Positions 25,426 through 63,770 of a DNA stretch of 64,000 nt are shown here, in pieces. Origin of the DNA: Octopus sinensis (Eukaryota); the NCBI RefSeq assembly GCF_006345805.1, contig NC_043001.1:51150001-51214000 (forward strand). The letters run 5' to 3'. The position numbers and the translations under genes are program-made. Numbering within the stretch: the stretch's first letter is position 1; each line of letters begins with the position of its first letter. The notes beneath the pieces are model-generated. The model was not told where the DNA came from. It searched no databases and saw only the letters and a program-made list of their open reading frames with translations.

Positions 25426-25460
25426 TTAATGGAAATCATAATTTCCATCAGTTTTGTATC
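25426..25460 (-). CDS. Candidate terminal coding exon, GYKTDGNYDFH*
   Basis: Acceptor catttatttcctacag|, correct phase 1, two tyrosines, TAA at 25428-25426, followed by AT-rich UTR-like sequence. Confidence 0.6.
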
Positions 25461-26782
25461 CTGTAGGAAATAAATGGTGATGTTTTGCTTTGGAAAAACT
25501 AAAAGAAAAGAAATAAAAACAAAAACATAAACAGGGTAAGAAGTATATGAATATTGGTCTAATTTTTTTTTCCTGTAAAGAATCCTCAGTAAACTCGTTC
25601 CTTTGTGGTTGTAGAACTTCATCCAATTAGTGCTGCAATAGGAAAAAATAAACATTATTATTAATTTCAGAGCTGTTTGTCTCAAATAACTTAATGAAAT
25701 CTAATTTCGAATGACATAACTCAGTTTCATGAAATGTTTATAAATGTTCTAAAAATACCAATATTTAGCTACAGTTCTATGAAATTATGTTAGTAAGGAA
25801 TTGATACATCTCTCACAGAGTGCTCTTCTATACCAAAAAACATTCACAAAAAATCTGGTATCTAATTCTTCATAGCTGAAATGATTATATTACAGAATTT
25901 AATAGTCAGTAGACACAAAAGAAAGTGTGTGCAATGGGTTAAAATTCAGGACCTTAAGTTGTCTTGTGGTATCTGTTCAACCTTATTATGTTCTTATATT
26001 AATGCCTGTAATGAGACTGGAGCCAAGCTCTACTTATTCAAAATGGCTGCTTTTCACTTGGATAAAAGGACTTTGCTTTTTCCTTGGATAACATCGGTGG
26101 CATAAAGAGGGGAGACTGGTATGCATGGGTGACTGCTGGTCTTTCACATATGACCTTGCCTGGACTTGTGCCTTGGAGGATAACCTAGTTGCAATCCTAT
26201 GGTCATTCATGACAGAAAGGGGTCTTTACTCTTTATATATATATATCTATGTAAATCTGTGTCTGTCTCTCTGTGTCTGTGTTTGTCCCCTCCATCACTA
26301 CTTGACAACTGGTGTTAGTGTGTTTACATCCCCCCATAACTTGATGGTTTAGCAAAAGAGACCAATAAGTACTAGGCTTTAAAAAATAAGTCTTGGAGTC
26401 AATGAGTTTGCCCAAAACCCTTCAAGGTAGTACTCCAGCATGGCCACATTCAAATGATTGAAACAAGTAAAAGAAAAGATTAAAGATAAAGATTCCACTA
26501 TCATCTCTCCTGCATAATCTTCTTATTTCTACATGATTACCATGATTCTAATAAAAACACAAAGCCTGAAATTTGTGGGGAAGGAACTAGTTGATTACAT
26601 CAACCCCAATGGTACTTAATTTATTGACCCCAAAAGGATGAAAGGCAAAGTTAATCTCAGTGGAATTTGAACTCAGAACACGAAGATAGATGAAATGCTG
26701 CTAAGCATTTTGCCTGGCATGCTAACAATTCTGCCAGCTTGCTGCCTTGCCATTAAATTTAGAAAATAATGAAAAATCTCAC

Positions 26783-26832
26783 CTTCATTTTGAGCGTGCT
26801 TCAGGGAATTTACTGACAATGGGTTTAAATAT
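26783..26832 (-). CDS. Cytoplasmic microexon 10 (50 nt, phase 2-1), VYLNPLSVNSLKHAQNE
   Basis: Acceptor catttatcttccag|, donor GAAG|gtgaga; paralog of 30761-30810. Confidence 0.9.
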
Positions 26833-27562
26833 CTGGAAGATAAATGAATCACACACTTAACAACAATGAAATTAACTGTAAAAAGATGAATTATACCTAC
26901 CTACCTATCCACATACATACATATATAATCCCTCTCACACACATACACAAACACACACACACACACACACACACAGACAGACATATTTCTACATATGTAT
27001 ATACATGCATACATACATATATATATTTATATAACAAGAAAAAGGAATTAAACTAATGGAATTTAACTAATCTTGGATTGCCTTGATAACATTGTTTTAA
27101 CATGTATATTCAGCTATATTAATTTGATTGATATTCGCTGTATCTAAATATGTTGCTACAACAGAAATGATCAATGGTATTATATGGTAGAATCACCAAT
27201 TAAAGATCACGCCTCTGCTCACGAATAAATCGTGCTTTATATATATCTTAGTTAAAAGCTATAAATATTTTTTTATCTTTGTTTTTAACTCTTTACATGT
27301 TTTAACTCTTCATATGCATTATCTGTCTGTGTATACATGTATGTGTGTGTGTGAATGTGTGTGAATGTGTGTATGTGTGTGCATGTGCTTGTTTGTACGT
27401 GTGTGTACATGTGTGTATGTTTGTGCATGCATATGCATGTGCATGCTTTTGTTTGTTTACATGTGTATTATTTGTGTGTGTGTGTGAAAAACCACCACTT
27501 CCATAGTTTCCTCACTCGATGAAGAAGGGATTGGGCCATTGCCGAGCAGTGGTTCATTATCT

Positions 27563-27601
<39 letters not shown>

Positions 27602-28010
27602 TGTGTGTGTGTGCATGAGTGTGTGTGTGTGCATGTGTGCATGTGTGTGTGTTTGGCTTTAAACTCATTTTTGCCCAGGAGATAAACTTCAACCTACTCC
27701 CAGGGTCTGACGTCGTTCTCTTAAGGCTTCTTACAAATACTCTCATCAGAAACTGTTGTAGTTCAGATTTAGATAAGTGCCCACCACATTCCATACTCAG
27801 CTGATTCAGCCAAGCAGTGTGATTGTATCTGCAATGATGTGAATGCTATACAAATTCTTTGACCACACAAACAACCATTATCAATTTTTCCCAAAACTAT
27901 CAAATATAAAGATATTTTTCTCTTTTTAAATTTCCAGGTAGATGGATTCAAATGAAAAAAATATATATAAGGAAAGTGTGTGAAGATATATTTTAATTTT
28001 GCATACTTAC

Positions 28011-28041
28011 ACATTCTCAGTAGATTTGCGGTCAATTGTCC
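28011..28041 (-). CDS. Cytoplasmic microexon 9 (31 nt, phase 1-2), GTIDRKSTEN
   Basis: Acceptor ctatttatttacag|, donor |gtaagt; paralog of 31368-31398. Confidence 0.85.
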
Positions 28042-28435
28042 CTGTAAATAAATAGATTTGTTAAATGTAAAGAGAAAAAATGAATTGAGAGAGAAAAAAA
28101 CAAACTCATCACAATTGATGGCCACCTACATATTAGCAGGCATGGTTTTATGGTAAGAAGGTTGATTATCAATCACGTGATCGATGCCAGGGCCCCTTGA
28201 CTGGTTCCCATGCTGCTGGCATGTAAAAAGCACCATCTGAACATGGCTGATGCCAGTGCCCCTGTCTGGCTCCTGTGCTGGTGGAATGTAAAACGTACCA
28301 ACTACACTCTCAGAGTGGTTGGCATTAGGAAGGGCATCCAGCTGGAGAAACATTGCCAGATTAGATTGGAGCCTGGCTCTCCAGTCCACAGTCAAACTGT
28401 GCAACCCATGCCAGCATGGAAAACAGACATTAAAT

Positions 28436-29400: not shown

Positions 29401-30760
29401 AACAGAGAGAATATGAAATAGCTCATGGAAGGTATCACTTCTCAATTGTGTCAAGTAACTTAACCTGCAGTAGATCAAGAGCAGGTCTTGTAGTCCACAC
29501 GGGAGCCCGCCAGAGGTGATTCCTTAACAGACTAGTCAACATTGACCTACAACGGACAGCTGCCATCACCAACATTACATAGTGTTTATATGAAATTACG
29601 TGATGTTTGTGTTGTCACTTCCTGTTTTTATTGCAAAAAATTTCCTTTTTTAAGGACAATTTACTTTCACTATTTTACAATGGTAAACTGCATGTTAACC
29701 ATGTGTACATGTATGTGTGTGTAGTTTTCTTATGTAGAATCATGCTGTTCCAGACTTGAGCTGATCATCTCTGTTGATTATTTAGACTTATGACTGTGTA
29801 ATAAATCTAAATAAATAAATGGATATGGCCAGTGAATAAACTCAGAGTACTTTGATGGGATTAATTCAATGAATTAAAAACAAACTGTGTAAAAGATAAC
29901 TTATTTTGATACAAAATTGCTATGTACATCTCTGTTGGCAATTATGTGTCTTTTCTCAGATGTATGTGCATATGCACACACATGCACATTCACCATACCC
30001 ACATGCAGATGCCCAGAGAGAGAGAGAGAGGAGGGGAGGTTTGTTGCAGATCAAGATAGTTCAATGCAATTGTGGGTAATTTCAGTATGAATTATTTACA
30101 AGAAACATAAATAATTTATGGCTTGGCATCAAAATTGAGATTTATAAAGAAAATAAAATAATAGAAATCTTCATTTGCTGAGTGCACACCCAAAATTATA
30201 GCTCAACTCCAATGGAAATTATAATCAACTTTTTATTTTGCAAATTGTAATGAGTGGATTTAAAAATCTACCAGGGTTTTACTCTCATTCAATACAGTAG
30301 CTGCAGGCTAGAAGTGGCCTTGTGGCAGGCCCTGCATCAGATGGCTGGGCATGATTGGGGAAGATCTCTACAGTCTTGACATCACTTTGGAGGATGCAGA
30401 GGGGCTGCCCCCGATGAAGAGCACTGGTTGACCTGATCAGCTCTACACATAATGATGTCTTTGGGGCCACTAACCTGGGATGACCCCAGCCCCATCAAAA
30501 AAAAGCATGAAGCAAAACCAAGCCAAGATCAAATAAATAAATGTAAGCATGCTTTGCAGGATGGGAATATTTATGAGATGGATGATTTGTCTGTAGGTGG
30601 TTGTCAGACAGATGGGTGGAATATGAGGGCATTTTGGCCATTCCACAATCATCTCTCCTGCATAATCTTCTTATTCTTCATGATTACCATGATTCTATCA
30701 TTTAAGCAGTTAAACTAATTAATGTTATTAAATTTAGAGAATAATGAAGAAAAATCTCAC

Positions 30761-30810
30761 CTTCATTTTGAATGCGCTTCAGAGAATTTACAGACTTCGG
30801 GCTTAAATAC
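30761..30810 (-). CDS. Cytoplasmic microexon 8 (50 nt, phase 2-1), EYLSPKSVNSLKRIQNE
   Basis: Acceptor gtttgttttccag|, donor GAAG|gtgaga; paralog of 26783-26832 with synonymous differences (CCG/CCA, TCT/TCA, TCT/TCC). Confidence 0.9.
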
Positions 30811-30984
30811 CTGGAAAACAAACGTATCAAATACTTATCAATGAAGGTGACTAAGAAAACAAATTATATAATTTGACATATAAGTAAAAAATAATAATTG
30901 AAGCCATTTCATGTAACATAAGAGACAATACCAAATATGAAGTGAAAACTTTGAGAGAGAGAGTGTGTGTGTGTGTGTGTGTGT

Positions 30985-31028
<44 letters not shown>

Positions 31029-31367
31029 GCTTTAAAACCATTCTTGTTCTGGTCATAAGCTTCACCTACTCCCTGGATCTGATGTTGTTTTTTATGTAAA
31101 ATTACCTTTAAATGCTCTCATCAGGAGCTGTTGTAGACTAAGATAAGTGCCCTCTACATGGCATGCTCAGCTGACTTGGCCATGCAGTGTGATATTGTAT
31201 CTGGAATGATGTGATTGCAACACAAATTCCTTAACCACATAAACTATCATTAATTTCACCCAAACCATCAGATTCTTTCTCTTTGTAAATTTCAAAGTAG
31301 ATTTCTTAAAGTAGAAAAAAAAAAAAGACAAAGAATTGTAAAGATTTTTTAAAATTTATATACTTAC

Positions 31368-31398
31368 TCATTCTGGGTAGCTTTGAGCGCTTTTGCCC
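31368..31398 (-). CDS. Cytoplasmic microexon 7 (31 nt, phase 1-2), RAKALKATQN
   Basis: Acceptor ctttatttacag|, donor |gtaagt; paralog of 28011-28041 with identical length and splice sites. Confidence 0.85.
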
Positions 31399-31498
31399 CT
31401 GTAAATAAAGTGATTTGTAAAATATTAATATCATTATATAATTACATATTTTTCTCTGTATAGATACATTAGTATATCAACATATATTTAAATATATA

Positions 31499-32429: not shown

Positions 32430-32476
<47 letters not shown>

Positions 32477-33523: not shown

Positions 33524-33561
33524 TGTCCATATCTATGTAGCCAATTTCTGCATATATAGGT
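33524..33561 (-). CDS. Cytoplasmic microexon 6 (38 nt, phase 2-1), EPIYAEIGYIDMD
   Basis: Acceptor attttctttctttttcag|, donor |gtaagt; encodes a YxxI motif preceded by acidic residues. Confidence 0.8.
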
Positions 33562-37769: not shown

Positions 37770-37794
37770 TCGTCATTTTCCGAGATAAATTCGT
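37770..37794 (-). CDS. Cytoplasmic microexon 5 (25 nt, phase 1-2), DEFISEND
   Basis: Acceptor atttttcttttgcag|, donor |gtaaga; three CpGs in 25 nt within a CpG-poor intron. Confidence 0.75.
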
Positions 37795-39380: not shown

Positions 39381-40672
39381 TGAGGGGCGTTCAAAAAGTA
39401 ATGCCCCTGACCCATTTGCAATTGTTTGATATAGCTGAAATTTTGCATGTGCAATTATCAATATCTCTATAACTTAAGTGGCAAATTACAGCTCGGAACT
39501 AATTGTGGTCTCTGATTTGCAGGTGTTTGTACTGAGTCAAGTGTGAAATGGAGCCTGTTGAATGTCGAGCAATGATCCGGTTTTTGTATTTGAAAGGACG
39601 CACACCACGGGAGACTTTTGATGAAATGAAAGTAATTTGTGGTGATGATGCCCCAACATATGACCTTGTAAAACGCTGGCATCATGAATTCAAACATGGT
39701 CGGAACTCTGTGGAAACAGCTCCCAGATCTGGTCGCCCCACTTCTGCTATTGATGAGGCATCTGTCCATCAAGTTGAGGCTGCCATTTTGGAAGATCGAC
39801 GCATAACTATTCACCAAATAGCCCATGAGGTCAAGATTAGTACCGGGTCTGTGGAAACTATCATTCATGACCAATTGCATATGCAAAAGGTGCCTGCCAG
39901 ATGGATTCCCACGTTGCTCACACCTTTCCAGAAGCAAGAACGTGTCGAGTGCTCGAGGATGAATTTGGAGATGTGCCAAGAAGATGAGTCAAAATTTTTC
40001 AAAAGACTGATTACACAGGATGAAACCTGGGTCCATCACTATGATCCAGAGACCAAAGCCCAGTCAATGCAGTGGAAGCACCACGACTCACCTCCTCCAA
40101 AGAAGGCAAGGGTGCAGGCCTCCACTGGCAAGGTCATGCTCACAGTCTTCTGGGACCAGGACGGAGTAGTGATGACAGATTTCCTGACAAAGGGTACCAC
40201 AATTACAGGAGCCTATTATGCTTCACTTTTGAGGAAATTAAGAGAAGCTATCAAAATCAAGAGGCGGGGCAAGATCAGCAAAGGCATCCTCCTCCTGCAG
40301 GACAATGCTCCGGTCCACAACTCGCGTGTCGCCAGATCAGAAGCACAGGCGTGCGGCTATGAACTCTCCCCCATCCCCCCTACTCTCCTGACCTTGCACC
40401 CTCTGATTTTCACCTCTTCCCAGCCATGAAGTTGTTTTTGAAAGGAAAACGTTTCCCAGATGATGCAGCCTTGATTTCTGAAGTCACGTCGTGGTAGGTA
40501 GACCAGGCTGGGGTCTTCTACAAAAATGGTCTCCAGAGCTGCATCAAACAATGGGAGAAATGTGTAACTCTGGGTGGTTCCTATGTAGAAAAAGACTAAT
40601 AACTACGCCAAGTTTTGTTGCTCTACTGCTATGGGAAGTGGGTCAGGGGCATTAGTTATTGAACGCCCCTCA
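39381..40672 (+). mobile_element. Full-length mariner DNA transposon (DD34D, irritans-like), inactivated
   Basis: 1292 bp; 34-bp TIRs (tgaggggcgttcaaaaagtaatgcccctgaccca, 2 mismatches); TA at 39379-80 and 40673-74. Transposase starts at 39548 with WIPTLL, TQDETW, QDNA and, after a 1-bp deletion near 40366, YSPDLAPSD (34 residues between the last two Asp). Premature TAG at 40495; natural stop at 40597-99. Confidence 0.95.
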
Positions 40673-42224: not shown

Positions 42225-42630
42225 AGCACAGGCATGGCTCTGTGGTAAGAAGCTTGTTTCCCAACCACATCATTCTGGGTTCAGTCCCACTGTGTGCACC
42301 TTGGCCAAGTGTCTTCTGCTATAGCCTTGGGGTGACCAAAGCCTTGTGAGTAGATTTGGTAGATAGAAACTGAAAGAAGCCCATCGTATGTGTGCGTGTT
42401 TGTGTGTGTGTGTCTTTGTGTCTGAGTTTATCCACCCCATGTGACAGCTAGTATTGGTGTGTTTATGTTCCCATAACATAGTGGATCAGCGAAAGAGATC
42501 GATAGAATAAGTATCGAGCTTTACTAAATAATAATAAGTACTGTGGTTGATAAGTTTTATTAAAATCCTTCAAGGTAGTGCTCTAGCATGGCCACAGTCA
42601 AATGGCCAAAACAGGTGAACGGTAAAAGAT
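42225..42630 (+). mobile_element. SINE family A copy
   Basis: Same motifs. Other plus copies at ~9834-9975 (head only), 26270-26480 (tail only), 45755-46120 and 63040-63440. Confidence 0.85.
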
Positions 42631-43070: not shown

Positions 43071-43120
43071 CTTTGTTGAAATCCCTAATGTACTTTATAC
43101 TGGATAACTTTGTACTGTCA
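43071..43120 (-). CDS. Cytoplasmic microexon 4 (50 nt, phase 2-1), YDSTKLSSIKYIRDFNK
   Basis: Acceptor cattatttctttctag|, donor AAAG|gtaagg; open frame fits both neighbours. Confidence 0.75.
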
Positions 43121-44237: not shown

Positions 44238-44277
<40 letters not shown>

Positions 44278-44358
44278 AATGTAGGATAAATTTTTTCGAA
44301 AAAAATTTTATCAATGGCCAGCATATTAAAAAATACCTTTAAAGGTTAAAATTATAAA

Positions 44359-44631: not shown

Positions 44632-44677
<46 letters not shown>

Positions 44678-44929
44678 TATATACATATATATTATTTTTA
44701 TAATATTTGTATGTGTATTTCTATCTATCTATCTATACACACACATGCACACACACACACATATGTATATACAAATACATACAGTAAAAAGCTGAAATGG
44801 GTACCAGAATTGCAGGTGCTGGCACAGTAATGTGCTAGCTTCAAACTTTAATCTTCAGAAGAGAAGGGGTTGGCAAAAATACCTAACTTGTTAACTTTAA
44901 TTAGATTTTCATACCCACCCTAGTATGTG

Positions 44930-46359: not shown

Positions 46360-46436
46360 GGGAGTCGTCATGTGGGAGCCAGAATGCAAGGTTGGAGATA
46401 AGTAGACAGCATTCTGGCTCTCACATGACGACTCCC
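46360..46436. other. 77-nt near-perfect hairpin
   Basis: 28-bp arms gggagtcgtcatgtgggagccagaatgc / gcattctggctctcacatgacgactccc (one G-T pair), 21-nt loop; a third degenerate arm copy at 46437-46474. Confidence 0.9.
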
Positions 46437-47441
46437 GGAGTGATCATGTGAGAGTCAGCATGCAAGTTTGAAGAAAGAGAGATATGTATATGTGTGTGTG
46501 TGTATGTATATGTGGGTGCATGTATGTGTGTATAAGGGCATATATACATTGGTTTGTGTGGAAGAGTGTATGTCTGAGTCTCCGTGTGAGTATGTGTATA
46601 TGTATCTGACCACTGAATACTAAAGGTCAGCCTAAGAGATTCTTATATATGGCCAACCATGACAAACATACCAAGATACAAAAAATAGAAGACCAATCCC
46701 ATTTAAATGCCAGCCAGTACCAGCTACTACCATTCATAGCAGTCTGACAAACACATTCTCACAGCAAACACCATGGGTCTATCAGCCCTACTAAATTCAA
46801 ACTACGATGAACAGAGAAGATAGCCTTGAAGTTGATGATTTTAAACTAATGGAAACAACACTCATATATCACCTGAGGAAACACAACTAGATCTCATTAT
46901 GCAAACAAACAGTTGCATAATCAAATACCTGTATTCTTGGAGAACTACATTGCATTGCAACAATTGCAGCCAATAATAAATAAATCTCTAATAGTACTCC
47001 TTTTTCTTGACTCCAATTTCTTCAATATATACATTTAAAAGAGTGGATGTGTTTTTCTATCTCTCTTCTATCTTTTCTCTTTTCAAAAAAATGCTTCTCC
47101 CAGCATTCACTATTTTCCTCTTGTTCTGGTCTAATAACCTTCCATGTTTGTTTTTGTTTGGTTTCCTTTTATGTCTCCACTTTTACCTTCTATGAATCCT
47201 AAATTTATGGAAGCAATTGACTTTAAAGACTCATATTATCATTGAATGCTTGAAATAAGGAGTTGATAGACAGCTGACAACTGATGAAGAGTCCTTTTTC
47301 TATGTTTACTTGTCCTGTTTTCCATTTTATTTCTCATTGCTTATGTCTTTCACTCACTTTCCCCTTGTTTGTTTACATATTTCATGTTATTTGCATCATG
47401 GGTGATGTCCTGTACCCATATATGCTTGTGTGTGTGTGTGT

Positions 47442-47510
<69 letters not shown>

Positions 47511-48119
47511 AAAAGCAATTAAGATTCAAGTCAATTCTAATGAATTTACTTGAATACGGTACTTAACTTAGATGCACCAGAAAACTATATGGTGTTAACC
47601 ATACAGTAATGTGGGGTGATTATAAACGAGAAAGAAGCAACAAGAATGGATTAGTTTTTAGTACAATTGTTTCATACAAAGACAGGCTTTATTAAAAGTT
47701 GCAAAAATTGCAGCAGATAAAAGTGTCCCATACTCATCAGCTAAAATACATGTGAGTTCTCCAAACATCTTAGTGGGTGAGGCTATACTCATGAAGTATT
47801 GGAGATAATTTCATTAAAAGCAGATTTAGGTTGTAAACAGATTTCCAAAGTTCCTTAATGATGATGCACAGTCTTATCACAGGTTTTTAAAAAAAGCTTA
47901 TTAGCTTCACAGAGAAGGTGAATTAATCCGTAGTGTAGATGTAAATTTCCAGAGATATGAGGAGGAATTTCATACTCACAGACGATGAATTTATCCATGG
48001 TTAATCCACAATGAGGTGGGTATCATTTCATGCTATATGATAAGGTATTTGCCACATTACTGCTCTCTTCACAAGACTGCTAAGTTATGACTTCTAAAGG
48101 CTGAAGGAATTTTTTGTGG

Positions 48120-48310
48120 AGCAAAGAAAAGAAAAGAAAGGAAAGAGAAGAAAAGAGACAATGGAAAAGGAAATAGAAAAAAAGAAAAAAAGAAAAAGGA
48201 AAAAAGAAAAAAAGGAAAAGAAAAAGAAAAAAGGGGAGAAGAAAAGAAAAAAGAAAAAGAAAAGGAAAAAAAGGGAAAAGAAAAAAGGGAAAGAAGGGAG
48301 AAAAGAAAAA
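48120..48310. repeat. A/G-rich low-complexity tract
   Basis: (GAAAA)n-like; gives spurious poly-K and poly-F ORFs. Confidence 0.9.
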
Positions 48311-48368
48311 ACGCCCACATAGAGTATACTGTGATAACTTAGAGGGAAGGGGTTCTAAAGTGACTTAC

Positions 48369-48424
48369 TACACAGAAGAATTTGTAGACGGCCTGGCTGG
48401 CTTGAATTTGTAAGAATCCAGGAA
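48369..48424 (-). CDS. Cytoplasmic microexon 3 (56 nt, phase 0-2), FLDSYKFKPARPSTNSSV + split Tyr codon
   Basis: Acceptor atattctccttatag|, donor |gtaagt. Its terminal TA plus the T of the next exon gives TAT (Tyr). Confidence 0.7.
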
Positions 48425-49218
48425 CTATAAGGAGAATATTATTTTTGACCAGTAAAACAGCTATTTTATTGCCAACCTGTAGATATTGCCAACAAAGCAG
48501 ATATGAATCTAAAGAGAATCTAAAGAGATAACAAGGTCAGGGGTAGAGGGGTCAAAGGCTATCATCAAAAGGAAATACATTAAGAGAAAAAATCTAAGTG
48601 CAATCCTAACAAGAGGTCATTTAAATTTATTTATTTATTTATTCCTGTTACTGTCTTAAATTGTTGCCGTTACTATCAATACATTGACAGACTACAGGTC
48701 AAAACTTAGAAGTTAGTTATATTGAAATTTCTCATACTACTTTCAAGGGAGTAGCCTTACTTATTTAATTTTGTAATAGAATTATGAAGCCTAAGTAACT
48801 TATTTTATTAAAGTTGTGTTACCTAAATTAGATTAAATTAAAAATTAAAAATTAAAATTAAGAATTTAAAATTAAATAAAACTTCATTTAAGCAACGTAC
48901 AAGTACTATTTATTTCCTTATGCTCGAAATCAGGTGCAGTTATAAAGAAATTGCCTGAACAGGTGCACTGTGTACCATGCCAACAGGTGTTGAAGTGGCT
49001 GCAGAGCAACATGAGTTGAAGTGTTTTGCTCAAGAACACAATGGACCACCTGGTCTAGGAAATGAAACCATGATCTCGCAGTCATGAGTGCAACAGCCTA
49101 ACCACTAGACCATGTGCCCTCATACACACACACACACACATACAGAGAGAGAAAAAGCAGGAGAGAGACGGTCAGAGATATCCTCAGCCTGTATATACAC
49201 AACACACACACACACGCA

Positions 49219-49262
<44 letters not shown>

Positions 49263-51493
49263 GTGCATAAGCAATACATTAGATATAGCAGTGTTTAAAC
49301 CAAGCCCAGCTATGCCCCCAATCACATAATAACTGCAAGCCAATGAAGGAGGCTTCGGCATTGGTTGCTCTCTATAGACTACAATTAGCAACCAAATTTC
49401 TCTCATATTACATCCTGTTGTTTCAAAAAAGTCACACTGGATTATATAGTCCTTGATATGCTATGTCTTAAACAAAAGAAAAAGATACGATGGTCATTGC
49501 TGAATCATTTGCGTTCTTAAGTCAGTTTGCTTATGATTGACATAAAGCTTTAAAAAGCAACCACAAAAGCCAGCTAAAAAGAGCATAAAATAACATACTT
49601 TGCTGCATCATAAACAGCACATGACCTATACCCACAGATAAGGTGCATAATGAAATCACAAATAAAAAATATAGCAGGCATGATGTGTCATGTAATCAAT
49701 ATTATTTTTAGTTTTTATTAATGATCTTCTGGATGATATCATGTTTAAACTTGTCAATCTCTTCTTGCTTGACTGAGGAACATTTGACTTGTATGATTGA
49801 GTGAAAATGATCAGTTTTCTGAAACTTAATTTGTGTTACTTTCAGCTCAGTAAAAACTAAACTTTTTTTCCCCCATTAATCATTAAAGAATTATGATGGT
49901 ATTCCTATTTCTCTGTCTGACATCGGTTTTTTTTTGTGTGTGTGTTTTTCAGTCTTCTTGTCTTTATGTTTTAAGTTTAACTTTATCTAAAGATCTTAAC
50001 TGGAATGATTAATCCTTTAGCATTCAAATTCCTGTGAAATGTGATGCTTATTTCTTCATATTATTTCAAATTGATTATGTATTTTCTTGTAGCATCAAGA
50101 TTTTGATGATGTGATTGTTTATTTTTACAATGACACAGTAGGGCAGGTGTAAGAAGCCAGATCTAGCTTGTCTGAGCATAAAACAAGAATATTTGGATTA
50201 GATATGGCCTATTTAAATGCTAAAGGGTTACATTAGAACTAATGTTAAATCAACCATTACGAATGTTAATTCATTATATTGAGCTCATCACTTTGTTTTC
50301 TTCAAATGTACTGTTCATTGTTATGACTCTCTTATTTACTTTTGTATGGAATGCTGTTGGTACACTTAGGCTGGTGATCTTTCTCTCTTTTGTTCAAAAC
50401 CAATATTCTAACCATACAGGTTCTGTTTTGGCAGTAAAACTTCAACCCCACTCTCATAACCATTACATTGCTTCTTTATCTCTATTCTATAAATACTTCT
50501 GTGATTATTGTCCTACCAGACTTTCATTCCTTGTACCATCTCTTCTTAAGATTATTACATGAGTGACTCATCTTTCTGCTAAATCTTATCCCTTCAACAT
50601 TATCTCCTACTCTAAGAAGTGTTCCTATTCCAGTAGTTTCTTTCCTGAACTATCTGTCTTTTGAAATTCTCTTTCTTGTTTTCTAGATAAATATGATATA
50701 AAACTCTTTAAGTCCTGTGCTGATTATTTTATAATTCTTAAGACAACCCATTTTCTTTATATTTTCATACATATAGATTTTTACCGCTTTCTTTTCTAAC
50801 TTCCAAGATACTAAGTAGTTGTTTTAAACTTGTTTTGATTTATTCTTACTAGTAACTTGCCACCTTGTTAAGAATGACTTCCAATAAAATAAAAAAAAAT
50901 TTATATGCTTTAACATTCAGATTATTCTATCAAATGCAATGCTTATTTATTTCCATTGTTTTGAATTAATCATATATTATCCTGTGGCTTTGAGATTTCA
51001 CTGAAGTGATTGTTTATTTTTAGAATGACCTCATAGGGTCGGTGTAAGAGACTGAGAGATAAAATTCCAAACTTGAAGTAACTAGTGGGTTTGATATCAT
51101 CAACTAAAACCTACCAAGGCATTGCACCACATTGAATGAATGAAACATAAAAGAATAGAGAATAAAGGAATTTCTTAATATGTATACATAGACTGTCACA
51201 CATTCATATATATTATGTATGTATATATATTAACCATTATCATCATTGTTTCAACACCCACTTTTCCATGTTCACATGGAGAAAGATTCTTGACTAGTTT
51301 AAGCATAAAATAGGTAGAATATTTTGGCTGGATATGGCTGGTTTAAATGCTAAAGGGTTAAAGTGGAATTAATGTGAGATCTAAAAGTCATTAAGAGGGC
51401 CCATTCTGTGAGTGAATTAAAGACCATCTATTTCAATGGTTCTGAAATGGCATACCACAGAATTTTGGATTTCTAAAAATATAATTTAATGTA

Positions 51494-51889
51494 GACGCAG
51501 GAGTGGCTGTGTGGTAACTAGCTTGCTTACCAACCACATGGTTCCAGGTTCAGTCCCACTGTGTGGCATCTTGGGCATCTTCTACTATAGCCTTGGGCTG
51601 ACCAAAGCCTTGTGAGTGGATTTGGTAGACGGAAACTGAAAGAAGCCTGTCATATCTATGTATATAAATATATGTGTGTGTGTGTGTGTGTTCATCTCCC
51701 TAGCATTGCTTGACAACCAATGCTGGTGTGTTTATGTCCCTGTCACTTGGTGGTTCGGCAAAAGAGACCAATAGAATAAGTACTAGGCTTACAAAGAATA
51801 AGTCCCAGGCTCGATTTGCTCGACCAAAGGCGGTGCTCCAGCATGGCCACAGTCAAATGACTGAAACAAATAAAAGAGTAAAAGAGTAA
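51494..51889 (+). mobile_element. SINE family A copy
   Basis: Complete head to taaaagagtaaaagagtaa tail; partial copies follow at ~52145-52305 (+) and ~52315-52510 (-). Confidence 0.9.
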
Positions 51890-53039
51890 TGCTTTGGGAA
51901 ATCTGTACTAATGCTTGAATATCTTGAAAACCATATGTTATTTATAATTGTGTTATATAAACAAAGGTACGCAACAGTTCTGGATATTGCAGTAGCAATC
52001 TGTGCTGCATCTTTAGCAATCTTGGGTTTTTCTGGCCTTTGGAATAATAATGAATCATTGAAGTTAGGGCAGCTAAAGTTCAGTTTAAGTTTGTTTAGAT
52101 TAATAACATTAGATTAATGGATGTAGGTAGGTGTGTGTCTATACAGGCATGGCTGTGTGATTAAGAAGTTTGTTTTCCAACTTCATCCATATGGTTTCAG
52201 GTTTGTCTAACTGCATGACACTCTTGGAAAGTGTCTTCTCCCGCAGCCCTGGGCTGACCAAAGCCTTGACTAGATTTGATTGACAGAAACTGAAAGAAGC
52301 CTGTCATATCTTTTAGTTGTTTCAGTCAGTAGACTGTGGTCATGCTGGGGCACCACCTTGAATTTTTAGTCAAATGAATCGACCCCAGTACTTATTTTTT
52401 AAAGCCTGGTACTTATTCTATTGGTCTCTTTTGCTGAACTAAGTTACGGGGACGTAAACACACCAATACTGGTTGTCAAGTGGTGATGGGGGACAAACAA
52501 TACAGACACATGCATACACACCACACACACACACACACATACACAATATTAGATTAGTGAAGAACTCCAGGTATCCTTGTGGTAGGGTCCAAGTTATGGA
52601 GTTCATCACTAATCTAACTAATAGTGTCAGCCTGGTATGCCAACAGAGAGCTTATGAAGTATTCTACCTGGATTAATAATCCATCACTATTTATTTTGTT
52701 ATATATGAGTATATATATTATTCGAATTTACAGAAAACAAATGACTTAGACAGGTGAAGGAACAACAAGCAAGTGTATTAGTTTAACACTTGGGAAGAGT
52801 GGAAAAGTCTTTGATGTTTTGAGCATATGCTCTTTGACAGAAAGAATTGAGAGGAAAAAAGAGAGAGAAAAATGTGTAGGGATTAATAGTTCAACATGAT
52901 GAAATCAGACCATGCTTGTGAAAAGACCCTAAATGATGGTGCATATGCAACTGCACATTCTCTATGCTGCAGAAACACATGTTGGTCATTTATCTAACTA
53001 ATTATGTTGTATAATTAGCAATTAAAATTAAAAGAACAT

Positions 53040-54035
53040 TTCTGGCATCAGGTTGAACATTGTAGTGTCTTTGCAAAAGATGCTGTATAACAGAAGCTTC
53101 AAGACTGCATTTGAAAAAATTCCATCTAACTCCCTAGATTACAAGGTAGTTATCAGATCAGGCAAGAATCCATCTTGTCAACCTGGAAGGAGGTTTAATG
53201 CTCCAACAGCAAATGAAATAGCTATGCTTCTGGCTGGGCAAGAACATGACAAGCATGACATTGTCCTCCATCTCAGAGACAGCACACTGACAGACACAGT
53301 CCAACTACAAATGGAAGCTTCCAAAAATACCATGCTCACAGCATTCTTCAAGCTCTGTCAAGATGATGAATTTGCTACAAGACTGCTATACAATGAAGTT
53401 CCACATTTCTATACCTGGTACCAAAACAAATGGAAAAGACATGCACTTGGAGCACCCACACATCATCTGGGAATTAAAAAACCAGACACACTTGGCAGAG
53501 TCTCTGTTGCTCATCCCAACTACTAAGAGTGTTACTATCTAAGTCTTCTATTACACCATGTCAAGTAATCCACATTATTTACAGCCTTACATATGGTTAA
53601 TAACATAGTATGTCAAACATATTGCCAGGCTTGCCATCTCAGAGGTCTTCTAGAAGACGATGCACACTGGGATGCCACTCTGACAGAGGCACAAATGTGC
53701 AAGTCTCCTTTGCAGCTGAGAAACCTCTTCTCCATCATGGCAACATGATGGGTGAGAATGTCTTCATTCCAAGGATACCTCTTATCTCAAATGACCTCCC
53801 CTTTCAGTTCAAGAGACTGCAGTTTCCTGTCAAACTCAGCTTTGCAATGTCTATCAACAAAGCACAAGCTCAATCGCTAAAGGTGGTGGGGCTTAACCTC
53901 CTTCAACCTTGCTTCACACATGGTCAGCTGTATGTTGGATGTTCTAGAGTTGGAGATGAAAAGAACCTCTACATTCTCAGTGATAAACATGGCAAGAGAG
54001 AAAACACAGTATATGAAGAAGCACTTACATGAATA
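53040..54035 (+). mobile_element. Internally deleted Helitron (RepHel remnant)
   Basis: Three RepHel pieces: RRFNAPTANEIA (pre-Rep), TMLTAFFKLCQDDEFA..LLYNEVP..YTW...W (post-Rep) and the PIF1 C-terminus QFPVKLSFAMSINKAQAQSL..VGLNL..PCFTHGQLYVGCSRV. The HUH motifs and helicase core are absent. Confidence 0.9.
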
Positions 54036-54824: not shown

Positions 54825-54849
54825 CATCAGAGGCTTTATATTAACCCAC
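54825..54849 (-). CDS. Candidate cytoplasmic microexon 2 (25 nt, phase 2-0), RWVNIKPLM
   Basis: Acceptor gccagttttcag|, donor GATG|gtgagg. Its only open frame is exactly the 2-0 phase needed to link 56912 to 48424. It was chosen partly for that fit, so support is weaker. Confidence 0.45.
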
Positions 54850-56911
54850 CTGAAAACTGGCACATTCACACACCCTCATAACATAAAACAAAATATTTTG
54901 AATGCTACAAATATATAAACGCATACAGAATGATATTTCAATAATGTTACCCATGCAAAAGCATAAAATGTTAAAGTTGACAAACTCAATGCTTTTCATT
55001 CCAGCAAAATAGCCATGCAAAGCATAAAATGTTAAAATTGACAACCTCAAGACTTTGTTATTCCAATAATTTTCAAGAGAAGATGTTTTTGTTGAACTAT
55101 AAGATGAAAGGAAAATCCTTAAAGTAAAAAGAAATTAATAAAAAACAAGGTATAACAAAGAAAGCAATAAACAAGCAGGAGTGAGAAAGATTTGAAATGT
55201 TCTTTTCTACTCTAGGCACAAGGCCCGAAATTTTTAGGGAGGGGGACACTTGATTAGAGTTGCAACTGGTACTTAATTAGAGTATGCAACTGGTACTTAA
55301 TTTATCGACCCCAAAAGGATGAAAGGCAAAATCGACCTCAGTGGAATTTGAACTCAAATGCAAAGACAGACAAAATACTGCTAAGCATTTCGACCAGCAT
55401 GCTAATGATTCTGCCAGCTTGCCGCTTTAAAGATCTGGGATATTGATGGAACAATTTCAGCATGGGTTATAAGAAAAGTTAGTAACTGATTCCAGCCTGA
55501 TCAGGCTCATATCCTCAGGGAAAAAGAAAGCTGATTAGTAAGAAAAATGTACAGTGCTTTTCTTTCTATCTACTAACTGACCTTCAACTCTTATATTAAG
55601 GTAGCAAGCTGTCTATGTTGTTAGAGCATCTGATAGAATGCCTCACAGAATTTGTCCTGACTCTCATTCCCACCATAACCATTCTCTCTTTCTGTATCAT
55701 TCTCCAATATGTACTGGGATTTTCTTAAAACAGTCAGATATGATATGAAGAAGTCTCACTGGTTTTACTAGCTGGCAATAACAGCAGTTGACAAAAGTAG
55801 AAGTTGGTGCTGAGATAAAGGCAAGAGTAGGTGAAGGGTAGCAACAGAGGTTGTTCAGAGAGGAATAGGAGTGCTGGCTGGCAACACAGCATAGTGAAGT
55901 TAAAGTGTATTGGATAGAGGATGATGGTAGCCAAATGCAGCTTCTTATATACTACTGAAGGGCAAGTGGGCAGTGATGAAGATGATGTGATCAGCAACAG
56001 GTGGTAAGGACATGATAGATGGAGAGCTCTTAGGCAAAAGGAAATGTAAAAGCAGAGATGATTTGGTAGAGAGGAGGTGGAGCAAGGATGCTAAGTGAAG
56101 TGAAACAAAGGCCTGGGTAGGTAGAGGGCAGCAAATGTAGGCTTAAAAGTACCACATTATGGGGTGACAATAGATTTTCATGATGGAGCACTGGAATAAC
56201 AGGTGATTACTAGACTAAGCTACCATCTTTTTCTATTTTCTATTTTTTCAGTTTCTTTTATTTTTTAGCTTATATTTTAATTCAGCACTGTACAATCTCT
56301 TCTACATCCAACATTATTAGCTCTTTATATTGAATAGTTAGGTAGAGTTAATTGGAGGGTAATGCGATTTTTGTCCTTGGATAGCAACTGTTATTTCCTA
56401 TTTGCTTACCCCTAGAAAGTATGAAAAATGGCTAATATTTTCTTCAAACTTTGCTTTTGTCATGTTTATTCAAACCCCAAAGAATCCCTCTCACACATGG
56501 CTATGATGCTCTCCAACATGATCAGAAATGCACATATTGTCAGCCCCTGAGGGACATGCTCAAGGGATTAAGGTCAAATGAACGACAAGCAAATCTGTGG
56601 TATTGAGCAGAATATTTGCTATAATGATATTTCTGCTTCAGCAACTCAGCACTGAATCTGTCTGACATGTAACGGAAAATAGGTCAGTTTCAAAGGTCAC
56701 AACATCAAAGTTTGAAGGGAACAGTAGTCATTTCCTTTGATTTCTAGATAGAAGCAAATAGGAAATAACACTTACTGACCAAAGACAAAAAAATAAAAAT
56801 AAAATAAAAATTTTGTTACATAGTGTTATACATTAAGTGTTAGAATTATTATGATAGATGTTAGAAAATGAAGAAAAGAAAAATGAATTGTTAAAAAAGA
56901 AAACAATTTAC

Positions 56912-56936
56912 CTTGAATATTCCCTTTTTTCAGTAA
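56912..56936 (-). CDS. Cytoplasmic microexon 1 (25 nt, phase 1-2), VTEKREYS
   Basis: Long pyrimidine tract ttttgttttgtttttttacag|, donor CAAG|gtaaat; open in the phase needed after the TM exon. Confidence 0.7.
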
Positions 56937-59502: not shown

Positions 59503-59610
59503 CTGATGGGATCTTCCTGATAGAAAAGTACCAAAAGCAGCATATGATAAGTGTAACAAGAATGAGAACTATCACAGCACACGTAATTCCAATGATCAGT
59601 ACATTATTAG
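59503..59610 (-). CDS. Transmembrane exon of the same receptor
   Basis: 108 nt, phase 1-1, acceptor gttatgtactttcag|, donor TCAG|gtaaag. Encodes ANNVLIIGITCAVIVLILVTLIICCFWYFSIRKIPS: a hydrophobic helix followed by CC, aromatic residues and an RK stop-transfer signal. Confidence 0.9.
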
Positions 59611-59699: not shown

Positions 59700-59701
59700 G
59701 A

Positions 59702-59750
<49 letters not shown>

Positions 59751-60000
59751 TTACATATATCTTAGTTGTCAATCATGGCCTGGATCTCACCTGGATATCA
59801 TCATGATGACGACCACGATATATATGTGTGTATATGCATATATATATGTGTGTGTGTATATATATATATATGTATGTATGTGTATATATATGTAAATGTG
59901 TGTGTGTGTATATATATACATATATATATATATATGTATGTATATATATATGAATATATATATATATATGTATATATATATATGTATATATATACACACA

Positions 60001-60065
<65 letters not shown>

Positions 60066-60068
60066 TAT

Positions 60069-60110
<42 letters not shown>
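59700..60110. repeat. Compound (TG)n/(TA)n/(CA)n microsatellite
   Basis: Explains the YI/HT/CV ORFs; similar tracts occur throughout the window. Confidence 0.95.
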
Positions 60111-60111
<1 letters not shown>

Positions 60112-61328
60112 CAAATAAGAAAAGGGAGAGGATAATCAATCGACAAACATCAGCCTGTAAACATTCATTTGGATCTATTTATTAATTAATTACAATCATA
60201 TGTATAAGTAATCAAAACAAATAAACAAATAAAAATAAGTAAATGAATAAGAAGTTAATGAGGGAAAAATACTAAACTCTTACAGCTATTTCTACTTTGG
60301 GGGTGTCCAACTTGTCAAGGTTTCCACATCATACCAGTAATATACAGGGATTGTACAAAGGTTGAACAAACATTGGACAGGGGTTGGACAATAATTGAGC
60401 CCCAAAGCTTCATCAGAGAGACCATAATGTTAGGAATCTAACATGTGATGAAGTAATATAAAATAATATAATAAAATAATAAAAAAAAAATAGTAAGAGA
60501 TAGCAAAAAAGTCAATTCCAAAGTAATATCCGTAAGTTATGGGATTATAGCTTATAGTAAAGAAAGTCACTCCCAGAAGTGATTTCCATTGGTTCTGAGA
60601 GTTACATCCTATTTCAATATACTGGAGGAAATAGCAATGGTAAGACATTGTGGAGTGAGGTTAATGGGATAGTCCATATCACAGGATCAAAAGTTAGAGG
60701 CTAATGGCTATGTAATAAAGTATCATAAAAATTAACAAAGTTAATGTAATGTGAACTTGCTTGGGAAATCAATACATAACTATATCAATGAAGGAATAAT
60801 TTGGGTAAAACTTGAGTGCAGGTCGTGCATGAAGACATTTGGTATTCCTCATACAAGATGAAGAAAGGGCCAATTTTTATCCCAAGCCATCAAGGACAAG
60901 AGGAAAGTCAATGCTATGAAGCTTTTGAACAAATTCAAGCATCCCCTTCAAATGAACGTTTTGGTTTATCTCAGATAAGAAAAATTTCTGTCAGAATCAA
61001 ATGGTGAACACAGAACAACCTTTGACTTACCGTGTCCCCAAAATATGTACTGAGAGTGATAAAAATCAAACACCCAGTCAACATGATGGTGTTTGGAGTG
61101 ATCATTAGTGATGGCAATGTTAGCCTCCATTCATCTTCCCACGTGGCCTCAGACTCAACACAGAGTCCTACATCAAGTGCCTGGTGAAGGTAGTGATGCC
61201 CTGGATCAAAAGGCTGGCTGCTGGAAAACCCTGTGTCTGGCAACAGAACTCTGCACCATACTACACAGGCAGGAGAAACCAGTCATGGCTGTCAGACAAT
61301 TTCTGTGACTACATCACCCCTAACATCT

Positions 61329-61561
61329 ATTTCTTTACTACCCACAAGGGGCTAAACACAGAGAGGACAAACAAGGACAGACAAATGGATTAAGTCGGTT
61401 ATATCGACCCCAGTGCATAACTGGTGCTTATTCAATCGACCCCGAAAGGATGAAAGGCAAAGTTGACCTCAGCGGAATTTGAACTCAGGACGTAGCGGTA
61501 GACGAAATACTGCAAAGCATTTCGCCCGGCGTGCTAACGTTTCTGCCAGCTTGCTGCCTTA
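61329..61561 (-). mobile_element. Young family-B SINE inserted in the maT transposase, 16-bp TSD
   Basis: TSD atcacccctaacatct at 61313-61328 and 61562-61577; removing the SINE and one TSD restores ...DYITPNIWPPNSPD. Confidence 0.95.
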
Positions 61562-61800
61562 ATCACCCCTAACATCTGGCCACCTAACTCCCCAGACTGC
61601 AACCCCCTTGATTATTATGTGTGGGGCATAATTGTGTAAGAGACCAACAAAACTCCTTGTAACACCAAAGATGAACTGAAAGCAAGGATATTGGCAACAG
61701 TCACCAACTTAAACAAGGAGACCATCCAGAAGAGTTGCAAGAGATTCTGAAGTTGTCTGGAGGCTGTGGTTGAAGCCGATGGCGATTTTATTGAATAAAT

Positions 61801-62211
61801 TTACTTGTTTCAGTCATTTGACTGTGGCCATGCTGGAGCACTGCTTTTAGTCGAGCAAATCGACCCCAGGACTTATTCTTTGTAAGCCTAGTACTTATTC
61901 TATCGGTCACTTTTGCTGAACCACTAAGTTGCGGGGAAGGAAACACACCAGCATTGATTGTCAAGTGATGTTGGGGGTGACAAACACAGACACACAAACA
62001 TATACACACATATATACATATATATGTATATATATATATATATATATGATGGGCTTCTTTTAGTTTCCATCTACCAAATCCACTCACAAGGCTTTGGTAG
62101 ACCCAAGGCTATAGTAGAAGACACTTGCCCAAGGTGCCACACAGTGGGACTGAACTGGGAACCATGTGGTTGGTAAGCAAGCTACTTACCACACAGCCAC
62201 TCCTACGCCTA
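61801..62211 (-). mobile_element. SINE family A copy inserted in the 3' UTR of the maT element
   Basis: Splits gaataaattta / ctttagtatttcaagat, a stretch that is contiguous (reverse strand) in the 38139-38442 copy. Confidence 0.85.
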
Positions 62212-63449
62212 TACACTTTAGTATTTCAAGATATTTCTTTGTAATTTTGGTAAATATATCTGTTAAAATGAGATGTCAGTGATATTTTCATGTTTGCATA
62301 ATTTAGATGACAATTTATTCACCACACCCTGTATATATATATATGTGTGTGTGAGTTTAGATGGATATATCATTCAGCTGGATACCATGGTGGTTCTCAG
62401 TTACAGCTATCACATCTATTAGTATTTGATATCTATGACTACTATTAATCATCACTGATGCTGAAAATTTCTGTGATGGGTAACTCCATATTCACTTCAC
62501 TGGATAATAATATTGCCTGGAGTGTATATTAGCAATAATTATAACAATATTGAACATGTGTGTGTGATGGGCTTCACTTACAGTTTCTGCCTACTAAATT
62601 CACTTACAAGGTATTATATATGGTAGCTGTGATACCAGTGCTGGTGGCACATAAGAGAACCATCCAAATGTGGCCATTGCTAGCGCTGCTCCGACTGGCT
62701 TCCGTGCTGATGGCACATAAAAGCACCATCTGATCGTGGCCATTGCCAGCCTTGCCTGGCCTCTGTGCCGGTGGCACATAAAAAGCACCATCTGATCATG
62801 GTCGTTTGCCAGCCTCACCTGGCACCTGTGCCGGTGGCACATAAAAATCACCCACTACGCTCATGGAGTGGTTGGCATTAGGAAGGGCATCCAGCCGTAG
62901 AAACATTGCCAGATCAGACTGGGCTTGGTGCAGCCTTCTGGCTTCCCAGACCCCAGTTGCACCGTCCAACCCATGCCAGCATGGAAAGCAGATGCTAAAC
63001 GATGATGATAATGATGATATATGTATATATAAGCACATGGATGTGGTTGTGTGGTGGGAAGCTTGCTTCCCAACCATATGACCCTGGGTTCAGTCTCACT
63101 AAATGGCACCTTGGGCAAATGCTTCCTACAAAAGTCCTGGGCGGATCAAAGCCTTGTGAGTGGATTTGGAAGATGAATCCTGTCACATATATACATGTAT
63201 GTGTGTGTGTATGTATGTCTGTATGTTTGGGCTTATCCCCCCACCACTTGACACCTGTACTGGTTTGTTTACATCTTGTAAATTAGTGGCTCAGCAAAAA
63301 AAAAAAGGCCAATAGTATTAGTAGCAGAAGCAAACTTTAAAATAAATACAGGGTTGATTTGTTCAAGTAAACCTTACAAATTGGTACCCCAGCATGGCCA
63401 CAGACCAAGAACTGAATCAAATAGAAAATAAAAGATAAATAAACCTTAC

Positions 63450-63770
63450 CTGTAACTGCATTTCTTAAAATAAATGTAGCATTTGATACACCTTCTTTAT
63501 TGTGAACATATAGCGTGTATTTTCCAAAATCTTTCTCTCTAATATTTTTTAATTCTAATTGAGCAATATATCCTGGTAACTGAACTGTTTCATTTACCAC
63601 AGTTGCTTGACGATTTGATTGGGATAAAATTACCCCTTCTTTTAGATGATTGTTATGGAGCCACTCAACATGAATTTTCTGAGAGTATGAATAAATGAAA
63701 CACTTAACAGTTTTGCTCTGTGACTCTTCAGCTTCAATGACATTTTCTAGATGATCCACAATAGGAACAC
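63450..63770 (-). CDS. Ig-like domain exon of a type-I membrane receptor (membrane-proximal domain)
   Basis: 321 nt, phase 1-1, acceptor ttttttaaatttcag| and donor ACAG|gtaagg. Translation GVPIVDHLENVIEAEESQSKTVKCFIYSYSQKIHVEW...GYIAQLELKNIREKDFGKYTLYVHNKEGVSNATFILRNAVT has the Ig hallmarks (B-strand C, C-strand W, DxGxY, NxxG). Symmetric phase-1 exons of about 100 codons are typical of IgSF domains. Confidence 0.9.

Follow-up and report, generated by a model that had tools for sequence, protein, structure and literature searches.

The receptor gene and its annotation

The window analysed here is a stretch of 64,000 nt from the Octopus sinensis genome (assembly GCF_006345805.1, contig NC_043001.1, positions 51,150,001 to 51,214,000 of the forward strand), and coordinates below count from its first letter. 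Its minus strand carries the 3' two-thirds of a gene for a single-pass membrane receptor of the immunoglobulin superfamily (IgSF), whose cytoplasmic tail is encoded by a long run of very small exons. The exons for the signal peptide and for the first two immunoglobulin (Ig) domains lie beyond coordinate 64000, outside the window. A first-pass annotation made from the letters alone had proposed a chain of ten tail microexons and a terminal exon following an Ig and a transmembrane (TM) exon, in a gene regarded as hidden; all 11 of its tail peptide pieces mapped to the minus strand, each where it had been placed.

The gene is already publicly annotated, yet uncharacterised. A protein search with the assembled peptide returned two clusters, from Octopus vulgaris and Octopus bimaculoides. 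The O. vulgaris orthologues are two isoforms named 'kin of IRRE 1' (CAI9722396.1 and CAI9722397.1), in an annotation made with Iso-Seq and RNA-seq. The O. bimaculoides cluster includes RefSeq XP_052823758.1, 'kin of IRRE-like protein 1', of 489 amino acids. Exhaustive search added a relative with 41% identity in Argonauta hians (GAB1602869.1, P0006), where the gene is annotated as well. The gene is thus not hidden, and these models contain eight of the microexons. GAB1602869.1 is deposited as 'uncharacterized protein LOC115211591 isoform X1', under the RefSeq gene number of another species, presumably that of the O. sinensis orthologue; if LOC115211591 belongs to O. sinensis, the orthologue is annotated there too. 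The searches themselves returned no O. sinensis protein. Literature searches with the gene LOC number, with the SRA run of an assembled transcript described below, and for octopus work on IgSF proteins or the immunoreceptor tyrosine-based inhibitory motif (ITIM) gave nothing relevant on this gene.

We compared the window with the loci of O. vulgaris (L002), O. bimaculoides (L001) and Argonauta hians (L003). Against the O. vulgaris locus it shows 0.65% substitutions (99.3% identical at the substitution level) plus indels, and it is about 90% identical to that of O. bimaculoides. The split between O. vulgaris and O. sinensis is dated to about 2.5 million years, and their split from O. bimaculoides to about 34 million years (PMC10700109).

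Exons of the receptor in the window

The supported exons, in order of transcription, are as follows.

63450 to 63770, minus strand: third Ig-domain exon (Ig3), 321 nt, phase 1-1; the gene's first exon inside the window.
59503 to 59610, minus strand: transmembrane exon, 108 nt, phase 1-1, encoding NNVLIIGITCAVIVLILVTLIICCFWYFSIRKIPS, with cysteines at the cytoplasmic edge; conserved.
56912 to 56936, minus strand: tail exon E1, 25 nt, TEKREYS, phase 1-2; in annotated Octopus proteins, with a 25-nt Argonauta counterpart.
55046 to 55117, minus strand: tail exon E2alt, 72 nt, R-IFLSSYSSTKTSSLENYWNNKVL, phase 2-2, with a weak donor, GTTGTC; missed in the first pass.
43071 to 43120, minus strand: tail exon E4, 50 nt, S-DSTKLSSIKYIRDFNK, phase 2-1; in annotated proteins.
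37770 to 37794, minus strand: tail exon E5, 25 nt, D-EFISEND, phase 1-2; Argonauta counterpart 25 nt.
33524 to 33561, minus strand: tail exon E6, 38 nt, E-PIYAEIGYIDMD, phase 2-1; carries the invariant Y-x-E-I and the octopod Y-x-x-M.
31368 to 31398, minus strand: tail exon E7, 31 nt, R-AKALKATQN, phase 1-2; linker exon of module A, Argonauta counterpart 31 nt.
30761 to 30810, minus strand: tail exon E8, 50 nt, E-YLSPKSVNSLKRIQNE, phase 2-1; in module A, the motif exon, with the invariant Y-L-x-P.
28011 to 28041, minus strand: tail exon E9, 31 nt, G-TIDRKSTEN, phase 1-2; in module B, the linker exon that duplicates E7.
26783 to 26832, minus strand: tail exon E10, 50 nt, V-YLNPLSVNSLKHAQNE, phase 2-1; in module B, the motif exon that duplicates E8.
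25619 to 25632, minus strand: the coding nucleotides with which the true terminal exon opens (CA CTA ATT GGA TGA, read A-LIG-stop); the 3' untranslated region (UTR) continues downstream.

The corrected coding sequence joins Ig3, the TM exon and segments of 25, 72, 50, 25, 38, 31, 50, 31 and 50 nt to a final 14 nt, and is open through ALIG*. The tail has about 110-135 residues, encoded by nine small exons and the 14-nt terminal coding segment, and its exons cover 31.3 kb. In the annotated proteins of O. vulgaris and O. bimaculoides the tail runs TM-VTEKREYS-(optional exon)-SDSTKLSS(I/V)KYIRDFNK-DEFISEND-EPIYAEIGYIDMD-RAKALKATQN-EYLSPKSVNSLKRIQNE-GTIDRKSTEN-VYLNPLSVNSLKHAQNE-A(L/P)IG*. The terminal acceptor at 25632/25633 is strong (tttattttttcctattgcag) and gives the stop annotated in both species (A-L/P-I-G*). 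Tyrosines fall on separate tail exons (E1, E2alt, E4, E6, E8 and E10).

As a description of the letters the earlier chain was accurate: exons of 25, 25, 56, 50, 25, 38, 31, 50, 31 and 50 nt, 381 nt in total, are all bounded by AG and GT, and with the Ig and TM exons they form one open frame with 10 tyrosines. Its picture of a tail split over many tiny exons in succession is also supported. The exact chain was wrong at three of its 11 pieces and missed the 72-nt exon at 55046-55117. Microexons 1 and 4-10 are borne out by the annotated proteins, O. bimaculoides and Argonauta; microexons 2 and 3 are not. The true tail holds 6-8 tyrosines rather than 10, and two of its tyrosine motifs are invariant among four family members. 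The neural-microexon signal UGC near the acceptors, checked by eye, was found at E4 and E5 only, so it is no general feature of these exons.

Conservation of the exon plan

Introns flanking the tail exons are 90-96% identical between the window and O. bimaculoides, so that percent identity cannot tell exon from intron between these Octopus species. The discriminating tests were instead frame, stops, indels and presence or absence, together with the comparison with Argonauta. E1 and E4 to E10 all keep their length, phase and AG/GT borders in O. bimaculoides. E5 retains its length with 8 of its 25 nt differing, and the E6 peptide is identical. In alignable DNA the two species differ by 7.9 indel openings per kb, which predicts about 6 in the 812 coding nt compared; one was seen, a 3-nt in-frame change, and these 812 nt contain no frame-breaking indel and no stop.

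The tail exons of Argonauta measure 25, 78, 47, 25, 38 and 31 nt, followed by a terminal exon, with phases as in Octopus. The E4 counterpart, of 47 nt, differs in frame; that of E6 has 38 nt and is among the few tail blocks that can be aligned as DNA; that of E8 is the terminal exon. Beyond the exons, alignment of the window with Argonauta is limited to scattered repeats. The same exon plan among decayed introns shows that the small-exon plan is old and has been maintained.

E2alt was located by tblastn with the O. bimaculoides protein. The O. bimaculoides exon has 69 nt, with a 3-nt in-frame indel, and the Argonauta counterpart 78 nt, with an acceptor of the same type and a weak GTT donor. 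A weak, unusual donor (GTTGTC or GTTAGA) is thus found in all three copies. The O. bimaculoides and Argonauta models contain the exon, and both O. vulgaris isoforms omit it. Alone among the tail exons it is frame-symmetric by itself, so its skipping, as modelled in O. vulgaris, leaves the frame intact; it is probably a cassette exon. If any other tail exon were skipped singly, the frame would shift. Eight consecutive small exons of this kind must therefore be spliced constitutively or in pairs.

E7+E8 and E9+E10, of 31+50 nt each, are a tandemly duplicated two-exon module, shared by the two Octopus species. Intron sequence was copied along with the exons: block 27582-28066 is 75% identical to 30963-31423 over 492 nt, and block 26752-26863 is 82% identical to 30727-30841 over 115 nt. 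Argonauta has a single module, with its motif exon terminal. Because the module has 81 nt and runs from phase 1 to phase 1, its duplication or joint skipping keeps the frame.

Segments excluded from the gene model

Three pieces of the earlier chain were rejected. Proposed microexon 2 (54825..54849, minus strand, RWVNIKPLM) has TGG changed to the stop TGA in O. bimaculoides, is less conserved than its own flanks in that comparison, and is in no annotated protein. Proposed microexon 3 (48369..48424, minus strand, FLDSYKFKPARPSTNSSV) has no counterpart in the O. bimaculoides locus and is likewise in no annotated protein. It falls within 44275-52511, a stretch of 8.2 kb shared by the window and O. 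vulgaris and absent from the O. bimaculoides locus. This stretch holds microsatellites and repeats resembling short interspersed nuclear elements (SINEs), and the O. bimaculoides junction consists of (TG)n/(TAGA)n/(TA)n repeats. Insertion, deletion and assembly collapse could each explain the difference; the junction has no N-gap, but many gaps occur elsewhere in that assembly. Since collapse at a microsatellite junction is possible, the absence of microexon 3 from O. bimaculoides is not decisive by itself.

Other evidence bears on the two segments jointly. They have the weakest polypyrimidine tracts among all exons (11/20) and are usable only as a pair, because 25+56 = 81 nt; E1 joins E4 in frame without them. 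At that splice quality, the 13.8-kb E1-E4 intron holds 57 candidate exons, which give 6 single and 131 double in-frame open insertions, against about 6 single and about 48 double in a shuffled-sequence null for the same intron. These counts leave the pair without statistical support.

The proposed terminal exon (25426..25460, minus strand, G-YKTDGNYDFH*) lies 173 nt downstream of the stronger, annotated acceptor and its stop (...NEALIG*). In O. bimaculoides the segment has 43 nt instead of 35, an 8-nt indel that destroys the frame. By sequence, 25426-25460 most likely lies in the 3' UTR.

Ectodomain and transmembrane segment

The ectodomain consists of three Ig-type exons or domains in the 489-residue orthologue. 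Pfam on orthologue P0003 gives Ig_3 (3.4e-13) and I-set (4.1e-10), and I-set residues 231-321 correspond to the window exon 63450-63770. On the orthologues Pfam detects Ig domains only, with no catalytic domain and no match in the tail. With the hydrophobic TM exon, this upholds the earlier proposal of a non-catalytic IgSF membrane protein. The Ig3 exon has acceptor ttcag|GT and donor CAG|gtaagg, and its length and splice sites are kept in O. bimaculoides and O. vulgaris, though both annotated O. vulgaris isoforms leave this intact exon out. The orthologue N-terminus, encoded outside the window, is signal-like (MMLQQSIILLLFTVISYSS). The TM exon reads LIIGITCAVIVLILVTLIICCFWYF followed by the basic stretch SIRK, and the TM segment contains no charged residue.

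Copy number varies in the ectodomain. At L002 51519-54683, outside the window, O. vulgaris has the first Ig-domain exon three times in tandem, compared with once in O. bimaculoides, and the annotated O. vulgaris isoforms chain these copies together.

Extent of the family and tail motifs

The O. vulgaris protein (P0002) was used as query in an exhaustive search of 1.84 billion representatives with a cut-off of E<=0.001. Only 38 proteins were found, and those sharing the tail are octopod proteins and one assembled transcript, Logan SRR25158158 (P0022, L004), a family member of the same layout with 25% identity. The best cellular matches outside cephalopods are Fc-receptor-like and similar proteins, aligned through one Ig domain. 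A profile search with the TM-plus-tail alignment (A1) of four family members, one of them an assembled transcript, returned only P0046, a close relative of P0022; as it missed known octopod members, it gives little information on the extent of the family. From these searches the family appears small and largely confined to octopods, in line with the earlier suggestion of lineage specificity.

All four A1 members, down to 25% identity, share the membrane-edge cysteine columns, Y-(A/E)-E-I and Y-L-x-P. Y-x-x-M is common to the octopods, and the duplicated Octopus module adds Y-L-N-P. A regular-expression scan of the four tails ([SIVL]xYxx[IVL], TxYxx[VI] and YxxL/I-x6-12-YxxL/I among the patterns) found no ITIM, no immunoreceptor tyrosine-based switch motif (ITSM), no immunoreceptor tyrosine-based activation motif (ITAM) and no NPxY. 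The four C-termini are ALIG, APIG, TYKK and THLT.

Several of these motifs resemble docking sites for SH2 domains. Src-family SH2 domains prefer Y-E/A-E-I, those of Crk, Nck and Abl Y-x-x-P, that of Grb2 Y-x-N and those of PI3K p85 Y-x-x-M; the assignments reportedly follow the peptide-library specificities of Songyang et al. 1993. E6 opens with E-P-I-Y-A, also the name of a Src/Abl target motif reported from an injected Helicobacter effector and from mammalian Pragmin; this is a resemblance only. As a conserved motif E-P-I-Y-A was discarded: Argonauta has D-P-V-Y-E, and only the Y-x-E-I part is kept.

A candidate phosphotyrosine-docking receptor

We propose that the gene encodes a non-catalytic IgSF receptor whose tail is probably a phosphotyrosine docking platform, and we put the probability that this reading and the corrected gene model are both right at roughly 65%. 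The fast-evolving ectodomain would bind a ligand, and the conserved membrane-edge cysteines are probably palmitoylated. The invariant Y-(A/E)-E-I would be both substrate and docking site of a Src-family kinase. This kinase would next phosphorylate the invariant Y-L-x-P sites, which should suit SH2 domains of the Crk/Nck/Abl type; the Y-L-N-P copy may suit Grb2-type SH2 domains as well. The octopod Y-x-x-M, also a candidate substrate of the kinase, would suit SH2 domains of the PI3K p85 type. Duplication of the 81-nt module would have provided one more docking site, and the E2alt cassette would alter both spacing and tyrosine count.

Several observations weigh against this proposal. Constraint between O. 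vulgaris-type and O. bimaculoides sequences is weak: dN/dS reaches 0.92 in Ig3 and 0.53 in the tail, and coding DNA is substituted at about the intronic rate. The tyrosines of E1 and E2alt, and that of E4 outside the octopods, are not conserved, and short tyrosine motifs are often chance products. For E2alt and the Ig3 exon, what is known of inclusion or skipping comes solely from gene models, and these disagree between species. In addition, the annotated models are partly homology-driven, the Argonauta pipeline having taken Octopus proteins as input (PMC12682272). The fast evolution fits a recognition receptor, as judged from sequence; in a gene evolving at this rate, constraint is seen mainly as retention of frame, splice sites and motifs.

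Alternative explanations

The same rates could mean that the gene is weakly constrained, its tail motifs incidental and its small-exon structure a frozen accident without signalling meaning, and the mutual inconsistency of the annotated models would agree with this, as would dN/dS values of 0.5-0.9 between Octopus species. We consider it unlikely, because about 6 indels were expected in the coding sequence and no frame-breaking one is present, because every supported splice site is kept, and because exon lengths, phases and the two motifs persist in Argonauta and in the 25%-identical transcript while introns have decayed. The transcript of the first pass, with microexons 2 and 3 and the ending GYKTDGNYDFH*, might exist at least as a minor isoform of O. 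vulgaris or O. sinensis: its three disputed pieces are bordered by AG and GT, their frame holds in O. vulgaris as well as in the window, and microexon 3 has the consensus donor GTAAGT. This is nevertheless highly improbable, since these pieces are in no annotated model, the O. vulgaris annotation based on Iso-Seq and RNA-seq included. O. bimaculoides, moreover, has a stop in microexon 2, lacks microexon 3 and breaks the frame of the terminal exon by its 8-nt indel. The two microexons also depend on each other for frame and are one of 131 equally good two-exon fillers of that intron, where shuffling gives about 48, and the terminal exon stands behind a stronger acceptor and a stop.

The remaining alternatives concern the kind of receptor. 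Two annotation pipelines chose a 'kin of IRRE' name, and there is a weak match to a single Ig domain of Kirrel3 (2cry, E = 0.027), as might be expected of a true Kirrel/IRRE (Neph) orthologue acting in Ig-Ig adhesion of the synaptic or slit-diaphragm type with a PDZ-binding C-terminus. Members of that family are defined by five extracellular Ig domains and a C-terminal PDZ-binding motif, whereas the octopus protein has three Ig-type exons in 489 residues, and ALIG, APIG and TYKK are no PDZ ligands. The search against the Protein Data Bank (PDB) placed OPCML (5.6e-05), neurotrimin (0.012) and DIP-eta (0.017) ahead of Kirrel3, and the best non-cephalopod cellular matches are Fc-receptor-like, over one Ig domain. 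Orthology to Kirrel is therefore very unlikely, and the label, judged from these comparisons, is one of generic Ig-domain similarity, unsupported as a family assignment. Those Fc-receptor-like matches, the fast ectodomain (dN/dS 0.92 in Ig3) and the tandem copies of the first Ig exon in O. vulgaris could instead point to an inhibitory or activating immune receptor of the SIRP, Siglec or Fc-receptor-like (FcRL) type, working through ITIM/ITSM and SHP phosphatases or through an ITAM adaptor. However, ITIM, ITSM, ITAM and NPxY are absent from all four family tails, the uncharged TM segment has nothing to pair with an ITAM adaptor, and the FcRL similarity is restricted to one Ig domain and the TM region. 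This mode of signalling is improbable, and the likeness to SIRP and Siglec drawn in the first pass fails at the level of motifs.

Other features of the window

Several elements lie within the introns of the receptor gene. The Ig3-TM intron contains a long microsatellite of the TA/CA type (59700-60150). In the E2alt-E4 intron there are two neighbouring open reading frames (ORFs) on the plus strand, 53053-53526 and 53610-54032, without Pfam match at E<=0.01; the end of the second looks helicase-motif-like by eye and recalls Helitron/Pif1 helicases. The E4-E5 intron holds a remnant of a mariner/Mos1-type transposase (39548-40429, plus strand), with an ORF of 293 amino acids matching Transposase_1 (9.9e-25) and HTH_48 (2.7e-06) in Pfam.

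Downstream of the receptor gene, block 12461-12570 is 85.6% identical to L003 22457-22567 in Argonauta, above any receptor exon, and the two are colinear. A plus-strand ORF ends here in ...VDSDEEDMR* at 12567, so the block probably belongs to a neighbouring convergent gene, as its last coding exon; as an RNA hairpin it was rejected (z-score -0.46). Short interspersed repeats at 8895-9007, 42298-42386, 45805-45901, 51580-51651 and elsewhere all match L003 16851-16963, non-colinearly. A second repeat family, around 20488-20651, 28309-28435 and 62855-63018, matches several sites of the Argonauta locus. A long trinucleotide-type simple repeat occupies 2868-3479; its ORFs are poly-S, poly-T or poly-L. 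No match came from Rfam or tRNA scans over the whole window.

Significance and comparison with known systems

This gene is a clean invertebrate case of a receptor tail made from a long run of very small exons. It can be used to study how runs of tiny exons are recognised across introns of several kilobases, and how phosphotyrosine tails grow through exon duplication. For cephalopod biology it offers a candidate non-catalytic recognition receptor whose putative docking sites are testable. It also carries a caution: reading open AG...GT segments by eye recovered eight true exons, yet accepted two chance exons in a 13.8-kb intron and overshot the stop. Comparison with two related genomes was sufficient here to part real from false exons.

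A wider interpretation is tentative, and we judge it less likely than not. A small, lineage-restricted IgSF family of octopods may have independently reached the design of vertebrate immune receptors, with one docking motif per tiny exon. It would combine a duplicable, frame-neutral module (two in Octopus, one in Argonauta), a frame-neutral cassette exon whose splicing could tune phosphotyrosine signalling, and a fast-evolving, copy-variable ectodomain for self/non-self or neural recognition.

The closest parallel in design is PECAM-1 (CD31), whose cytoplasmic domain is likewise split among short exons (9-16), its tyrosines falling on different ones, and in which inclusion or skipping of exon 14 (19 residues) changes function (PMC2132561). 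Like PECAM-1, the octopus protein is a single-pass IgSF receptor without a catalytic domain and with a tyrosine tail built from multiple short exons. PECAM-1 differs in having six Ig domains and ITIM-type tyrosines, and the octopus tail is without ITIM. No sequence relationship to PECAM-1 was detected in the exhaustive and PDB searches, so the likeness is one of design and presumably convergent.

With the Kirrel/IRRE/Neph proteins the octopus receptor has in common a single-pass IgSF architecture and a tyrosine-containing tail; it differs in its three Ig-type domains and in the lack of a PDZ-binding end, and the similarity is no better than to IgLON and DIP proteins. Amphibian and fish Fc-receptor-like and leukocyte immune-type receptors supply the best non-cephalopod matches (for example Xenopus FcRL4, E = 1e-20) and, as the octopus receptor does, place Ig repeats before a TM segment and a tyrosine tail. 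These matches cover one Ig domain, some extending through the TM segment, and the ITIM/ITSM-like motifs of their tails are absent from the octopus receptor.

LAT, PAG/Cbp and p130Cas are palmitoylated transmembrane adaptors or YxxP scaffolds, with almost no ectodomain or cytosolic. We found no homology between the octopus receptor and these proteins; the octopus tail is similar to them in its membrane-edge cysteines, its disordered look and its candidate docking tyrosines for Src-family kinases and SH2 domains.

The tail can finally be set beside animal microexons, whose size limits are 3-27 nt in the strict sense and up to 51 nt in the broad one. E1 and E5, of 25 nt, are strict microexons, eight tail exons meet the broad limit (with E4 and E6 to E10 at 31-50 nt), and E2alt, of 72 nt, meets neither. 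Known microexon programmes consist mostly of single, alternatively spliced, frame-preserving neural exons, whereas the octopus tail is a constitutive-looking run.

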